NCBI RefSeq assembly: GCF_000006765.1
Contig: NC_002516.2
Strand: one strand, 5' to 3'
From: Pseudomonas aeruginosa PAO1
GTDB lineage: Bacteria > Pseudomonadota > Gammaproteobacteria > Pseudomonadales > Pseudomonadaceae
Length of the DNA: 64,000 nucleotides
The notes beneath the pieces were generated by a model. The model saw only the letters and a list, made by a program, of their open reading frames with translations. It ran no database searches and was not told the DNA's origin. This document shows positions 33,450-41,547 of this stretch, one piece after another (within the stretch, counting starts at the first letter, position 1; each line of letters opens with the position of its first letter). The position numbers were made by a program, and so were the translations under genes.

Positions 33450-33526
33450 TGGTAGGCACGATTGGATTCGAACCAACGACCCCCACCATGTCAAGGTGGT
33501 GCTCTAACCAACTGAGCTACGTGCCT
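33450..33526 (-). tRNA. tRNA-Val(GAC)
   Basis: AGGCACGTAGCTCAGTTGGTTAGAGC-ACCACC-TTGACAT-GGTGG...GGTTCGAATCC...CCTACCA; 77 nt with CCA. Confidence 0.98.
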
Positions 33527-36081: not shown

Positions 36082-37047
36082 TCAGCGGGGCGGTGCGCCA
36101 ACGGGACAGGCCGGCAGCTCGGCGCACCGAGCCGCGGGTGCGACGGCCTGCGGCAAGGCCGCAGCGAAGCGGGCTTCCCCAGGCTGCAATGCCCGCGCGC
36201 AGGCCTGCGCCTGGCGCGCCGGCGCCGCGCAACCGCGTTCCGCCAGCAACTGGGACAGGTTGAACCAACCCGCGGCGAAATCCACGCGACGCTCGACGCT
36301 GGTGAGCATGGCCTGTTCGGCAGCGGCGGAATCGCCTGCGGCGTAGCGACTGTTGCCCAGGGCAAACCAGGCGAAGGCGTCCTCAGGCCAGCGTCGCACG
36401 GCTTCTTCGTAGGCGCGCCGGGCAACCTTGGGGTGGCCGGTTTCCTCGCTGTCACTGGCGGCCTTGAGCCACGGGACCGCCGCTGCCGTGGCCGGCAGGC
36501 GGTCACCCGGCAGGGTCAGCACCGCCCAGCGCCCCGAACGCTTCCAGGTCGACTCGAAGCTGGTGAAGTCGGTAACCCAGCGCCGGGTGATGCCCGAGCG
36601 CAGCACCAGTTCGCGGCGCTCCCGATCGAAACCGACCACCACCGCGAAGTGCCAGCGCGGCCACCAGGAGAAAGCCTGGTTCTGTAACACCAGCACCGGG
36701 TTGCCCGCCGCGACCTCCTCGAGCACGCTCTCCAGTCCGCCTTGCAGCGGATAGACCAGCATACCGTGGCGGCGCGCCGCGGCGACCATCTCCAATTGCA
36801 GGCTGCCCTCGCGACCGGGAATGAACACCTCGTCCTTCAATTGCCCCGGCGTCAACGCCAGGCCGCGCTGGCCAAGCATCGTGGCCAGCGCGGCGGGACC
36901 GCACTGGTAGGCTTCCTGGGGGAAGAACGGCACTTCGCGCAGCTCCACCCGTGCGGGCAGCACCGCGCTTTCCGGCGGCAGTCTCGGCGGCTGCGCGCAG
37001 CCGCCGAGCATTGCGGAGACCAGCAGTGCCCCTGCCAGCCGCCTCAC
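36082..37047 (-). CDS. PA2778-family C39-like cysteine peptidase lipoprotein with a TPR-like C-terminus
   Basis: GTGA overlap with the upstream gene; MLGGC lipobox; VPFFPQEAYQCGPAALA, WHFAVVVGFD. Confidence 0.85.
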   Translation of the reverse strand: MRRLAGALLVSAMLGGCAQPPRLPPESAVLPARVELREVPFFPQEAYQCGPAALATMLGQRGLALTPGQLKDEVFIPGREGSLQLEMVAAARRHGMLVYPLQGGLESVLEEVAAGNPVLVLQNQAFSWWPRWHFAVVVGFDRERRELVLRSGITRRWVTDFTSFESTWKRSGRWAVLTLPGDRLPATAAAVPWLKAASDSEETGHPKVARRAYEEAVRRWPEDAFAWFALGNSRYAAGDSAAAEQAMLTSVERRVDFAAGWFNLSQLLAERGCAAPARQAQACARALQPGEARFAAALPQAVAPAARCAELPACPVGAPPR

Positions 37048-37442
37048 CGATTGATGCATTTGATGAAGCTGAAGATATCCGTGGCGCAAAGCATGTCGGT
37101 GATGATGAAGATCACCAGGAACAACACGATGATGCCGATGATGCCGCCCGCCGGCGCCTGGTCCAGCTGCTGGTTGAACTGCGCCAGCTCGGCGTTGGTC
37201 AGGCTGTTGATGCGACTCGCCACCTGGTCGCGGGGCACGCCCATGGCCTCCAGCTTCTTCTGGACGCCCTGGTCGTCGAGCATCTTCAGCAGTTGCTGGC
37301 GATCGAGGTTGTGCTGTTGTTGCTGCATGACTTCCGCAGTACCGATCATCGCTGCCTGGGCGAGCGGAACCTCGGCGAAGGTGAGCAGGTGCAGCGCTGC
37401 CAGGACGGCAGCGACACGGCGGATGCTTGTTGTTGTTCTCAT
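37044..37442 (-). CDS. PA2779-family protein (signal peptide, helical middle, GG, hydrophobic tail)
   Basis: MRTTTSIRR...AQA; LTNAELAQ...PAGG-IIGIIVLFLVIFIITDMLCATDIFSFIKCINR. Confidence 0.85.
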   Translation of the reverse strand: MRTTTSIRRVAAVLAALHLLTFAEVPLAQAAMIGTAEVMQQQQHNLDRQQLLKMLDDQGVQKKLEAMGVPRDQVASRINSLTNAELAQFNQQLDQAPAGGIIGIIVLFLVIFIITDMLCATDIFSFIKCINR

Positions 37443-37849
37443 GGGAATGACCTCTGCGTGAAACCCGGCTATTAGTCCTGGAAGGCGAGGCTTGGTTCCG
37501 CAACGCCCACCTTTCCTGAGTATCGTCCCGATCGCCGTTTTCCGCCGCCTCGGCGCCGATGCCCGCCCCTCTGGCGAGACGACGACCCGCCGCCCCCAGG
37601 CGACGAAACGGCGTCCGCCTTTATGCAATTCGCATATACTCCGGCTCGCCGCGAGAAAACCGGAGCATGCGCGATCTCGGCGACATCGACGCATATCCCC
37701 GCCGCAGCCTCGTACACGGCGTCGAAACCGCGCGCCGCCCCGGACGACAGAGCCTCCGGCACGGCGAAAACTAAGGATTCCTGAGCTTCCATCTTGTCCA
37801 GATTTGCCCAACCTTGAGCGAGCGGGCCAACGGGACGGGAGTTGTATGG

Positions 37850-38194
37850 ATGCTAGGTACCCGGCTAAAAGCCGCAAGAATCAGAGCGGGATACTCGCAG
37901 AAACAGTTGGGCATGCTGGTGGGAATGGACGAGTTTTCCGCCAGCGCACGGATGAACCAATACGAACGCGAACGGCACTCCCCCAACATGCGGACTTCCG
38001 AACAGCTGGCCATGGTCCTCCAGGTCCCCATGGCCTACCTCTATTGCCCCGAGGACGAGCTGGCCGAGCTCATCCTCAAGGTGTCCAGCCTGACACCCGA
38101 GTTCAAGAAAGAGCTGACGCGTTTCATCGAACAGTTGCTCGCGGCCCAGGGATCAACCAGCCGCCAGCCTGTACGCACAAGGAGTGAACTGTGA
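37850..38194 (+). CDS. bswR: XRE-family regulator BswR
   Basis: RLKAARIRAGYSQKQLG...SARMNQYERERHSP; 114 aa from ATG 37850; synteny. Confidence 0.8.
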   Translation: MLGTRLKAARIRAGYSQKQLGMLVGMDEFSASARMNQYERERHSPNMRTSEQLAMVLQVPMAYLYCPEDELAELILKVSSLTPEFKKELTRFIEQLLAAQGSTSRQPVRTRSEL

Positions 38195-38869: not shown

Positions 38870-39010
38870 CCTGGCGCCCGCAGCGCTCCGGCCTGATTCG
38901 CAGTTTCGTCACGCCGGCGCGCGGCCTGGCGCAAATGTGAACGGTTGCCGCCACGCTGGGAGAGGCTTCTTCCTAGACTCCGCGCCACGTTCACTCAGAG
39001 GAGAAACAAC

Positions 39011-39670
39011 GTGGCCAAGACATGGATCTACGCAGCCTCGGCCGCCGCCATCGGCGGTGCGCTGATCGGCGGCTGGCTGCTCGACCCGGCTCCGCCCGAG
39101 GCATCGCCGCAGGCCCGCCAGTCCCCCGCCGCCCAGGCAGCCGCCGCCCCGACAGCGGCGCTCGCGGCGCCGGCGGCGGACGCTACCCGCATGCTCGCCC
39201 CGACCCCCGTCACGACGCCCGCGCCACGCGAGCGGGTGACGCTCTGGCAAGGCGAACTGCGCAGCCGCGAAGGCGCCCAGGGCATTCCCGAATACCTGGC
39301 GCAGGTCGAACCCGCCCTGCTCGACACGCTGGCGCTCGGCCAGGTGCTGGAAATGAGCCTGCCGGGTCGCGAGCGGCCCTTGCAGGCACGCCTCGCCAGC
39401 ACCCATAACAGCGCCGGCCTGCCGGTCTGGCGCGGCGGCCTGGTGGACGGCGACGAGGCGGAAAGCCTGACCGTGGTGCGCGGCAGCCTGGAAACCCACA
39501 TCAATGTCGCCACCCTCGACGGCAGCTACTCGATCATCGTCGACAACCGCAGCGGCAAGACCCGGGTGATCGACGAGAACGACATCGCCGCGCGTAGCGA
39601 CCCGCACGGCGATCATGTCGACGCGCCGCTCGCCGAGCTGCCACCGATGCCGCCGCCCGCCCAGGGCTGA
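39011..39670 (+). CDS. bamI: Metzincin inhibitor/partner BamI
   Basis: GAGGAG SD, GTG 39011, 219 aa, directly upstream of mep72. Confidence 0.75.
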   Translation: MAKTWIYAASAAAIGGALIGGWLLDPAPPEASPQARQSPAAQAAAAPTAALAAPAADATRMLAPTPVTTPAPRERVTLWQGELRSREGAQGIPEYLAQVEPALLDTLALGQVLEMSLPGRERPLQARLASTHNSAGLPVWRGGLVDGDEAESLTVVRGSLETHINVATLDGSYSIIVDNRSGKTRVIDENDIAARSDPHGDHVDAPLAELPPMPPPAQG

Positions 39671-39747
39671 GCCCACCTTCCCAGCATGTTTCCCCAGCGG
39701 TGCCCTCGGGGCGCCATGGCTTCCTATTGTCCGAACACAGGCAACCC

Positions 39748-41547
39748 ATGAAGAAATCCCTGCTCTGCTCCACCCTAGCCCTGGCGGTAGCCTCTGCCGC
39801 CCAGGCCGCGCCGAAGACCGTCGACATCATGGTCCTCTACACCCCCGCGGCGACCCAGACCGCAAATGGCCGCGACATCGATGCGCGGATCGCCAGCTAC
39901 ATCGAGTTCGCCAACACCGCCTACGAGAAGAGCGGCGTCAACCTGCGCCTGCGTCTGGTGCACAAGCAGCGCCTGGACTGGGCCGACTACCCGACGGTGA
40001 CCGGCGCCAACCTCGATCGCTTCATGCGCGACCCGCAGGTGCAGCGCCTGCGCGAGCAGTACGGCGCCGACCTGGTCAGCCTGGTCAACCGCTCGCAGAA
40101 CAGCGGCAACGGCTACATCACCTGCGGCATCGGCTACATGGGCTCGGGCGATAAGAACAGCGGGCGCTTCCACGGCAACGCCAAGGACATTGCCTACAAC
40201 CTCACCGGGGTCGACTGCGGGCTCAACACCTTCGCCCATGAAGCCGGCCACAACATGGGCCTGCGCCACTCCTACGAGCAGGACCTGGAGTCCAGCTACT
40301 ACGATCCGCGCTACGCCCACAGCGGCACCTACGAATGGAGCCGCGGCTACGGCGTGCAGGGGCGCTTCGCCACCGTGATGGCCTACCCGCATGCCTTCGG
40401 CACCAACAAGCAGGCACCGTTCTTCGCCAACCCGCGCCTGGTCAACGCCGAATGCGCCAACCAGCCCTGCGGCCGCGAAGAACACGCCGACGCCGTACGC
40501 GCGCTGAACAGCATGGCCACGCAGATCGCCGACTTTCGCCCGACCAAGGTACCCGGCACGGTCAACCCGGGCTCCGGCGGCGACACGCCGACCCCGCCGG
40601 ACCTGCCATGGTGCACGAAAGCCAAGCTCGGCGGCCTGCTCGGCGATGGCGAGTTCGCCAGCATGGAAGGCTGGCGCGCATGGTCCGGCAACGCCCAACT
40701 GAGCCTGGTGAACGTCGCCAAGGGCTGCCGCGACAATGCCTTGCTGGTCGACGTGCGTGGCTTCGACCTGCTGGTCCGCCCCATTGCCCCCCTGCGCGCC
40801 GGCAGCGGCTACCGGCTGAGCGGCAAGGTCATGCTCAAGGCCGCGAATACCCGTGAAACCGTGCGCATGGCGCTGCTCAGCGAACGCGCCGATGGCGCCC
40901 TGGCCTACAACCCGGCGCAGAGCGTCGAACTGTCGGTCAGCGGCAACGAGTTCAGTCGCCTGGAGAAGACCTTCGACTACCGTCCCGCCGCCGACCAGCG
41001 CAACCTCTACGTGGCGGTCTGGAGCGACAGCGGCGCCAGCCTGCTGGTCGACGAGATGAACCTGCAGGAAGCCCAGGCCGCGCCGCCGAGCGTACCGCCG
41101 GCGCCGAAACGCATCGCCTACGACTTCGAGAGCGGCATCGGCGGCTGGAGCGGCGTGCATGCCAGCGCCCGCGCCACGCGCGTCGCCAGCGCCGGGCGGC
41201 TGGCCCTGGAAGCCTACCAGCGGCGCTACGCCGGCACCGGCGCGAGCACCAGCCTGCTGGGCAACCTGGAAGCAGGCCGGACCTACGCGTTCAGCGCGGA
41301 CGTACGGGTCGGCGACGGTCGCGGCTCGCAGGCCATGACCTATGCCTACCTCTACCTGGAAAGCCAGGGTCGGCCCGGCGAATACCTGCCCCTGGGCTAC
41401 AAGGTGGTCGAGAATGGCCGCTGGGCCAGCCTGCGCGGCCAGGTGCAATTGCCGAAGGGGCCGATCAAGCGTGCTGAACTGATGATCCTCAGCGGTAACC
41501 AGCAGGAGTCGATGTTCATCGACAACGTCCAGTTGCTGCAGAAGTAG
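39748..41547 (+). CDS. mep72: Secreted metzincin metalloprotease Mep72 with two carbohydrate-binding-like domains
   Basis: Signal peptide; HEAGHNMGLRH zinc motif; TVMAY Met-turn; 599 aa. Confidence 0.88.
   Translation: MKKSLLCSTLALAVASAAQAAPKTVDIMVLYTPAATQTANGRDIDARIASYIEFANTAYEKSGVNLRLRLVHKQRLDWADYPTVTGANLDRFMRDPQVQRLREQYGADLVSLVNRSQNSGNGYITCGIGYMGSGDKNSGRFHGNAKDIAYNLTGVDCGLNTFAHEAGHNMGLRHSYEQDLESSYYDPRYAHSGTYEWSRGYGVQGRFATVMAYPHAFGTNKQAPFFANPRLVNAECANQPCGREEHADAVRALNSMATQIADFRPTKVPGTVNPGSGGDTPTPPDLPWCTKAKLGGLLGDGEFASMEGWRAWSGNAQLSLVNVAKGCRDNALLVDVRGFDLLVRPIAPLRAGSGYRLSGKVMLKAANTRETVRMALLSERADGALAYNPAQSVELSVSGNEFSRLEKTFDYRPAADQRNLYVAVWSDSGASLLVDEMNLQEAQAAPPSVPPAPKRIAYDFESGIGGWSGVHASARATRVASAGRLALEAYQRRYAGTGASTSLLGNLEAGRTYAFSADVRVGDGRGSQAMTYAYLYLESQGRPGEYLPLGYKVVENGRWASLRGQVQLPKGPIKRAELMILSGNQQESMFIDNVQLLQK

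Follow-up and report, generated by a model that had tools for sequence, protein, structure and literature searches.

Co-inheritance of a predicted C39-type peptidase lipoprotein, PA2778, with the small membrane protein PA2779 in Pseudomonas aeruginosa and other Pseudomonadota

Introduction

C39 peptidases are the textbook cytoplasmic leader-cutting domains of bacteriocin exporters. Here we analyze PA2779 and PA2778, two overlapping genes in a 64,000-nt stretch of Pseudomonas aeruginosa PAO1 (hereafter the window, in whose positions all coordinates are given), which encode a 132-residue protein with a predicted membrane-spanning tail and a lipoprotein that joins a C39-type peptidase domain to a tetratricopeptide repeat (TPR) domain. 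An original prediction, drawn from the letters of the window, held that the lipoprotein cuts PA2779 after a Gly-Gly and so releases a 32-residue, disulfide-held hydrophobic peptide with membrane-active or signalling function. Its observations are confirmed: translation returns the 132-residue protein with its LTxxEL motif, the GG, the 32-residue tail with two cysteines, the stop codon that overlaps the next gene, and the lipoprotein with QxxxxCGPAAL and a downstream histidine. Its interpretation is partly supported, and among its parts the release of a disulfide peptide has the least support.

The closest described systems are the double-glycine leaders and their C39 transporters of the ATP-binding cassette (ABC) type, such as ComA, PCAT1 and LahT. 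PA2778 resembles these in its papain-like C39 fold with a Gln/Cys/His/Asp set and in the adjacency of the partner gene, and PA2779, like a double-glycine leader, carries an amphipathic helix with L-(T/S)-x-x-E-(L/V) followed by Gly-(Gly/Ala/Ser). The classical context, in which the peptidase is the N-terminal domain of a transporter on the cytoplasmic side, is not found here; PA2778 is a stand-alone protein, predicted to be a periplasmic lipoprotein and fused to a TPR domain. PA2779, unlike a double-glycine precursor, carries a Sec signal peptide, the part before its glycine site is a folded domain of 70 residues rather than a leader of 15-30, and the part after it is a predicted transmembrane helix rather than a secreted peptide.

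Two further groups of systems share features with this locus. In C-terminal sorting, tails such as GlyGly-CTERM, PEP-CTERM and LPXTG are processed by rhombosortase, exosortase and sortase, respectively. PA2779 has Pro-Ala-Gly-Gly directly before its C-terminal transmembrane helix and a cysteine enzyme encoded next to it, and removal of the anchor would free the N-terminal domain, as in those systems. PA2778 is, however, a lipoprotein with a soluble domain, neither an intramembrane protease nor of the sortase fold, each enzyme here goes with a single putative substrate rather than many, and the PA2779 tail has a conserved acidic and aromatic motif instead of a clear basic cluster. The second group comprises the periplasmic protease and TPR systems BepA, NlpI-Prc and LbcA-CtpA, in which, as we suggest for PA2778, a periplasmic TPR module brings a specific protein to a protease and the TPR protein is lipid-anchored. 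Those systems use metalloproteases or serine proteases and mostly keep the TPR protein as a separate adaptor; in PA2778 the protease is a C39 cysteine peptidase, it is fused to the TPR domain, and just one partner is inherited along with it.

A precedent for a Sec-exported periplasmic C39 peptidase exists in Pseudomonas itself. FapD, encoded in the fap operon, is a catalytically active C39-type enzyme of the periplasm that works with no ABC transporter, as we suggest for PA2778; what FapD cuts is still unclear, and the site may be a non-canonical one (PMC5557850). Unlike PA2778, FapD is part of a six-gene amyloid secretion operon and lacks a TPR domain, and no lipid anchor or tail-anchored partner has been described for it. 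No fap genes lie in the neighborhood of PA2778 in the window. The description that suits PA2779 and PA2778 best is that of a C39 peptidase-substrate theme in a periplasmic variant with a TPR docking step. Our best reading, which we hold tentatively and with less than even confidence, is docking of the peptidase on PA2779 followed by a cut beside the membrane. New in this analysis are the strict co-occurrence of the two genes, the pattern of residue conservation, the distribution of the tail cysteines, and a controlled prediction of the complex.

Results

PA2779 and PA2778 form a catalogued, strictly co-inherited gene pair

The two genes occupy the following positions:

37044..37442, minus strand: PA2779-family gene (132 residues, DUF6627; stop included), from translation and the NF033919 and PF20332 profile matches
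36082..37059, minus strand: PA2778-family cysteine peptidase lipoprotein gene, from the NF033920 match and the invariant Cys17

The pair is already catalogued, with families that are named and a function that is uncharacterized, as the original prediction had stated. PA2779 matches NF033919 (PA2779 family) with 140.4 bits against a cut-off of 40, over profile positions 2-123 of 123, and PF20332 (DUF6627) with 123.6 bits against a cut-off of 27; PA2778 matches NF033920 (PA2778 family cysteine peptidase) with 355.5 bits against a cut-off of 150, over positions 1-255 of 255. The window genes are the founding members of these families or near-identical copies of them, and we find no difference. 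In the literature searched, PA2779 appears only as a hypothetical protein, as the source of a strong constitutive promoter in P. stutzeri, and as one transposon-screen hit.

Across 401 Pseudomonadota genomes (a sample that includes the unpublished G384, counted only among the genomes without the family), DUF6627 scores above its cut-off at 51 places, spread over 49 genomes. The same 49 genomes have NF033920 above its cut-off, and at 51 of 51 places the two are adjacent. The PA2779-type gene precedes the peptidase gene, and the two abut or overlap, both in the 30 of 30 loci first inspected and in 8 divergent loci. Named members come from Pseudomonas, Stutzerimonas, Marinobacter, Shewanella, Salinimonas, Glaciecola/Brumicola, Alkalilimnicola and the Zetaproteobacterium Mariprofundus, and the small protein has at least 2,899 matching protein clusters in a profile search. 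Within 8 kb on either side of 21 loci there is no third conserved gene, only antisense shadow open reading frames (ORFs) and lineage-specific neighbors. Nor is an ABC exporter conserved within that distance, in agreement with the claim that none is involved; ABC ATPase-like ORFs occur in 5 of the loci at varying distances, which is chance level. PADLOC defence models gave no match to either protein at E <= 0.01. The peptidase lipoprotein is tied in function to the small membrane-anchored protein, very probably as its binding partner and perhaps as the enzyme that cuts it; the tie had been proposed and now draws on co-occurrence, on adjacency and on the predicted complex described below.

One Mariprofundus genome holds two pairs, L023 (G174:C9) and L056 (G174:C14), and another (G158) also holds two. 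In one of the G174 copies an in-frame TAG interrupts the peptidase gene and the small gene is intact. The N-terminal motifs of the paralogous pairs within these single genomes are near-identical in both cases, and so are uninformative on partner specificity.

PA2778 retains the catalytic residues of a C39 peptidase

Translation of PA2778 can begin at an ATG at 37059 (325 residues) or at a GTG at 37047 (321 residues), so that its 5' end overlaps the 3' end of PA2779 by 16 nt or, as GTGA, by 4 nt. The M-H-Q/K-S start at the upstream ATG is common to the nearest relatives. Residues are numbered here by the 321-residue form, in which the features are:

36997-36999, minus strand: lipobox Cys17 (LGGC), invariant in 28 sequences
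36508..36945, minus strand: C39-like peptidase domain, residues 35-180 (PF13529, PF03412, Foldseek)
36901-36903, minus strand: predicted catalytic Cys49 (QCGPAAL)
36649-36651, minus strand: predicted catalytic His133 (WHFAV)
36160..36480, minus strand: TPR domain, residues 190-296 (TPR_16, TPR_14), predicted binding site for the PA2779 N-terminus

The N-terminal domain matches PF13529 (Peptidase_C39_2) with 36.2 bits, cut-off 24, and PF03412 (Peptidase_C39) with 23.6 bits, cut-off 22. All of 28 peptidases ranging from Pseudomonas to Zetaproteobacteria have Gln44, Cys49 and His133, and at least 90% of them have Asp141. The AlphaFold2 model is confident (predicted local distance difference test, pLDDT, 93; predicted template modelling score, pTM, 0.88), with six helices between residues 190 and 287 in the TPR part. 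Foldseek places the N-terminal domain closest to the Bacillus anthracis C39-like protein 3ERV (1.2e-5), PCAT1 (5e-4) and the ComA peptidase domain (7e-4), with the pseudomurein endoisopeptidase PeiR at about the level of ComA; for the C-terminal domain the matches are TPR proteins that bind peptides. The weak fold matches include 9L5U, a papain-like toxin-immunity pair, and a sequence search against solved structures returned generic TPR matches only. The invariance of Gln44, Cys49 and His133 indicates that PA2778 is under selection to cut something. Judged by these residues, PA2778 is, as had been predicted, a C39-type cysteine peptidase, one kept active by selection and not a degenerate C39-like chaperone domain.

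Three genomes of the Pseudomonas family that lack DUF6627 have as their only PA2778-like match one that falls below the cut-off (136-140 bits) and ends before the TPR part. That the match in genomes without PA2779 stops there fits the TPR domain being the part that binds PA2779. These lipoprotein paralogues lie at L051 2995-3657 (minus strand), G224:C78:53711-54247 and G060:C29:25106-25648. In L051, the sole one read, the catalytic cysteine is replaced by serine (AYQSGPTAL), and the domain looks like an inactive C39-like domain.

The C-terminal 70 residues of PA2778 (36082-36300) carry four extra conserved cysteines after the TPR domain in the Pseudomonas and Marinobacter homologues checked (L031, L032, L037, L040), at about +224, +234, +259 and +265 from the catalytic cysteine. 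They probably form two periplasmic disulfides, and they are absent in other lineages, L048 included.

PA2779 is a predicted tail-anchored protein with a conserved linker and tail

Conservation in PA2779 was taken from 38 distinct genome-derived sequences, from 182 distinct tails in all, and, for invariant columns, from 29 homologs. The features of the protein, from its N-terminus, are:

37353..37442, minus strand: Sec-type signal peptide, residues 1-30, predicted cut AQA|A (A30 invariant, A28 in at least 90% of 29 homologs)
37317..37352, minus strand: mature N-terminus, residues 31-42 (AMIGTAEVMQQQ; AMIGTAEV...), predicted to dock in the PA2778 TPR groove
37158..37337, minus strand: periplasmic four-helix region, residues 36-95 (AlphaFold2 helices 36-55, 58-66, 71-80 and 83-95)
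37185-37202, minus strand: LTNAEL, residues 81-86
37143..37154, minus strand: juxtamembrane linker PAGG, residues 97-100, candidate C39 cleavage site (P97 invariant, G99 in at least 90%)
37083..37142, minus strand: transmembrane helix, residues 101-120 (Kyte-Doolittle, AlphaFold2)
37062..37097, minus strand: conserved tail motif T-D-x-L-G/C-x-T-D-v-F-x-F, residues 116-127 (D116, T121 and F126 invariant)

Export by Tat is unlikely, as the twin arginine in the signal peptide of the P. aeruginosa protein is not conserved in homologs. Behind the signal peptide, the mature N-terminus keeps a small-hydrophobic-hydrophobic-small-Thr/Ser pattern. The core of the four-helix region was modelled with pLDDT 68-80, and the protein as a whole with pLDDT 65. 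Sequence searches of PA2779 against solved structures gave no match, and a fold search gave nothing below E 3.5, a result to which the low confidence of the model lends little weight.

The invariant positions are A30, L64, G68, V69, R77, E85, P97, D116, T121 and F126, and G99 and G103 are nearly so. By entropy, variability is lowest in the linker (96-100) and next lowest in the tail motif (116-127). Residues 101-119 reach a 19-residue Kyte-Doolittle maximum of 2.98, and AlphaFold2 places a helix at 101-117. The expected topology, from these predictions, has the N-terminus outside and the C-terminus inside: once the signal peptide is cleaved off, the helix in the tail would leave the C-terminus, Cys129 included, facing the reducing cytoplasm.

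The juxtamembrane glycine site is conserved as Pro-x-Gly-(Gly/Ala/Ser)

The original prediction placed the cut after a GG. The literal GG is absent in about half of the distinct PA2779 sequences, and the commonest form is PAGAG; what is conserved is Pro-x-Gly followed by Gly, Ala or Ser, present in 177 of 182 distinct tails (97%) and compatible with the known tolerance of C39 peptidases. The residue after Pro-x-Gly is alanine in 92, glycine in 80, serine in 5, glutamate in 4 and glutamine in 1. Between the glycine site and the membrane helix lies a variable linker of 1-8 residues. On sequence grounds, this juxtamembrane Pro-Ala-Gly-(Gly/Ala/Ser) is the only C39-compatible site in PA2779, and it follows a leader-like amphipathic helix.

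The TPR domain of PA2778 is predicted to bind the PA2779 N-terminus

Mature PA2778 (18-321) and mature PA2779 (31-132) were modelled together in one prediction, with alignments made for this analysis and three controls. The interface score ipSAE had a median of 0.63, against 0.01 for the best of the three controls. For comparison, the ipSAE mark is reached by 58 of 80 solved complexes and by 2 of 110 mismatched pairs, counts that are rough here since the alignments were made for this analysis. The pLDDT of the partner was at least 54 and contact agreement between runs at least 47%. The confident interface joins PA2778 TPR residues 194-296 to PA2779 31-42 (31-36, 38-39 and 42); the residue pairs of least error stand at 1.5-3 A, and the docked segment is the new N-terminus that signal-peptide removal would make. 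The model supports binding of the PA2779 N-terminus to the TPR domain. On cleavage it says nothing either way: the two proteins are predicted to dock, but the GG is not placed in the active site.

This geometry raises the alternative that PA2779 is a permanent partner that is never cut, serving as a tether, an adaptor or a pseudo-substrate inhibitor whose N-terminus in the TPR groove positions or restrains the peptidase. The enzyme would then act on other envelope targets, proteins or cell-wall peptides, in the manner of NlpI-Prc, LbcA-CtpA and BepA. The sole confident predicted contact, from TPR domain to N-terminus, lies away from the active site, and the high conservation of the tail and the transmembrane helix is as expected for a lasting membrane component with another contact; the fold match to PeiR, about equal to that with ComA, also fits. 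The C39 enzymes known so far are, however, narrow processors of a cognate precursor encoded nearby, no other conserved neighbor points to a different substrate, and 97% of distinct PA2779 sequences carry the C39-compatible Gly-(Gly/Ala/Ser) in an exposed linker. We consider a permanent partnership the chief rival to cleavage, possible but doubtful; data from a type VI secretion screen, given below, also bear on it.

The tail cysteines are confined to two lineages

37086-37088, minus strand: Cys119 of PA2779
37056-37058, minus strand: Cys129 of PA2779

Both cysteines of the 32-residue hydrophobic tail (residues 101-132) are present in 129 distinct sequences, neither is present in 53, and none has a single one, so the two positions seem, from this pattern, to cooperate. 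The pair is confined to the Pseudomonas/Stutzerimonas/Marinobacter clade and one distant genome (L048), and is missing from most sampled lineages, among them Mariprofundaceae, Shewanella and Alteromonadaceae. On the peptidase tree it needs two origins, L048 grouping with the cysteine-free L049 at 96% support on a long branch. Because the pair is lineage-specific, a disulfide is not the mechanism of the family; and because Cys129 would face the cytoplasm in the predicted topology, a metal site or a subunit contact is as likely as a disulfide. A link between the cysteine-rich C-terminal extension of PA2778 and the PA2779 pair was considered and rejected, as the extension is missing in L048, the second lineage with the pair.

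These data bear directly on the released peptide of the original prediction, an active product of 32 residues freed by a cut after the GG and held by a disulfide. The tail does hold the most conserved motif of the family, the glycine site is largely conserved, and the both-or-neither pattern of Cys119 and Cys129 with its two origins is what a functional pair could leave. Yet 53 of 182 distinct sequences and most sampled lineages do without the cysteines, and the N-out/C-in topology puts Cys129 in a reducing compartment. Residues 101-119 are moreover a typical transmembrane helix, strongly predicted, which after a cut would stay in the inner membrane of the producer as a stub, and neither an export route nor a receptor is encoded nearby. 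An active disulfide-held 32-mer is improbable on this balance.

Many of the Mariprofundaceae homologues (L005, L006, L008, L013, L022, L025, L026, L029) have His-rich ends instead of the cysteine pair, such as HPVHHHAHDN, HRHAH, HSHAH and HSHGH. In iron oxidizers, such ends give a hint that metal is bound on the cytoplasmic side.

PA2779 insertions are depleted when H1 type VI secretion is active

One published screen gives PA2779 a phenotype. In a TraDIS experiment (sequencing of the sites where transposons have inserted) aimed at immunity genes of the H1 type VI secretion system (H1-T6SS), insertions in PA2779 were far fewer in the H1-T6SS-active than in the inactive background; the supplement lists PAKAF_02302, which is PA2779, with a log fold change (logFC) of -5.69, p 6.2e-5 and q 0.0024 (10.1101/733030). 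The divergent gene bswR (PAKAF_02301, PA2780) was also depleted with H1-T6SS active (logFC -2.54, q 1.6e-4); the main text of that study calls PAKAF_02301 PA2778, and its own table gives PA2780 (10.1101/733030). The phenotype suggests a role for PA2779 in the envelope.

The authors of the screen named PA2778/PA2779 as a candidate toxin-immunity pair, which they did not take further (10.1101/733030). PA2778 would then be a peptidase toxin delivered by the H1-T6SS and PA2779 its immunity protein, and both the place of PA2779 among the hits of an immunity-gene screen and the weak fold match to 9L5U would be accounted for. The conserved lipoprotein signal with its invariant lipobox cysteine, however, implies Sec export to the envelope of the producer and not loading onto a T6SS spike. 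The small gene lies upstream of the peptidase gene, not downstream; T6SS genes of the VgrG, PAAR or Hcp type are not conserved beside the pair in 21 loci; and the same architecture recurs in very different lineages. We judge a type VI toxin-immunity pair very improbable.

The same phenotype can be set beside a permanent partnership of PA2779 and PA2778. Tolerance of PA2779 insertions without H1 type VI secretion and their depletion when it is active fit an envelope hydrolase that, once deregulated, sensitizes the cell to incoming effectors that target the envelope. Loss of a plain inhibitor of a harmful enzyme, on the other hand, should hurt irrespective of type VI secretion.

Gene neighborhood

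37443..37813: intergenic region between PA2779 and the divergent bswR (PA2780)
37814-38194, plus strand: bswR (PA2780), XRE-type regulator, 126-residue ORF (HTH_31 and HTH_3 matches)
33450-33526, minus strand: tRNA-Val (GAC), between upstream ORFs and the gene for a flavin adenine dinucleotide (FAD)-dependent oxidoreductase

The flanks agree with the PA2776-PA2783 region of P. aeruginosa, with the FAD-dependent oxidoreductase, a formate/nitrite transporter homologue, BswR and an M12-type metallopeptidase with carbohydrate-binding modules, and the closest sampled genome has 84% of the sampled words of the window in common. The divergent arrangement of bswR and PA2779 has been described (PMC3985676). 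A GAGG Shine-Dalgarno sequence stands 8 nt ahead of the PA2779 ATG. A simple scan of the region ahead of PA2779 found no sigma-70 consensus promoter, and terminator-like sites were no more frequent in the scan than in shuffled sequence. Contigs from four RNA-library runs, 5-27 kb long, cover the entire region and are uninformative on operon, strand and level.

A few kilobases from the pair, at 38945-41547 on the plus strand, a 241-residue ORF with no Pfam match precedes a 615-residue M12/reprolysin-like metallopeptidase with two CBM_4_9 modules and the motif HEAGHNMGLRH, a second arrangement of a protease with a small partner. We take these genes to be PA2782 and PA2783 (BamI/Mep72).

A long antisense shadow ORF (36742-37461, plus strand) covers the peptidase gene and has equivalents in 15 of 21 loci. 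We rejected these ORFs as genes; they are kept merely through the conserved sense frame in high-GC DNA.

Discussion

We propose that PA2779 and PA2778 form a self-contained, two-protein envelope module. With no further conserved neighbor, one-to-one inheritance and preserved catalytic residues, PA2779 is the simplest substrate for the peptidase. PA2779 would be exported via Sec, lose its signal peptide after Ala30, and be held in the inner membrane by its single C-terminal transmembrane helix, with a helical domain of about 70 residues toward the periplasm and the TDxLGxTDvFxF motif at the cytoplasmic face. PA2778 would be a lipid-anchored enzyme of the periplasm that combines an active C39-type peptidase domain with a TPR domain, whose groove would capture the free N-terminus of mature PA2779 (AMIGTAEV...). 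The docked peptidase may then cut PA2779 in its unstructured juxtamembrane linker, at Pro-Ala-Gly-(Gly/Ala/Ser), which would set free a soluble periplasmic domain of 70 residues, with 32 residues staying behind as a membrane stub. Such a cut would amount to ectodomain shedding, not peptide secretion.

Several observations weigh against docking followed by cleavage at this site. The residues after the lipid-bearing cysteine of PA2778 are A-Q-P; with no aspartate at +2, the Escherichia coli rule suggests from the sequence that the lipoprotein goes to the outer membrane; so placed, the enzyme would be distant from a site that lies 1-8 residues above the inner membrane. The likeness to a double-glycine leader is also imperfect. 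The spacing from LTxxEL to the glycine is, as had been noted at the outset, longer than canonical, by 8 residues, with E85 15 positions before G100 where the canonical place is -8. A canonical leader is hydrophobic at -4, -7, -12 and -15, and PA2779 has Pro97 at -4 and Asp94 at -7, neither of them hydrophobic. Models of double-glycine leaders and bacteriocins gave no match to the C-terminal 58 residues at E <= 10, the glycine is followed by Glu or Gln in five distinct sequences, and the Pro-x-Gly break before the membrane helix could be conserved for structure alone. The model of the complex contains no confident contact of the PAGG linker with the C39 cleft. Finally, the strong conservation of the PA2779 tail lies where a periplasmic enzyme cannot see it, so shedding by itself does not explain that conservation.

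A further reading is a trans-envelope signalling switch. The TPR domain would capture PA2779, the linker would be cut upon envelope disturbance, for example by a type VI attack, and the stub would signal inward through its cytoplasm-facing motif, whose lineage-varying cysteine and histidine decorations might bind metal. We think such a switch unlikely. If true, it would be a new kind of regulated proteolysis, one started by a periplasmic C39 enzyme.

Should PA2779 and PA2778 prove to be a housekeeping protease and its anchor, the interest of the pair would be modest. Roughly one in eight of the sampled Pseudomonadota genomes has the pair, and the depletion of PA2779 insertions under H1 type VI secretion offers a starting point. 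A periplasmic, lipid-anchored C39-TPR enzyme with a dedicated membrane partner would extend C39 chemistry to envelope biology.

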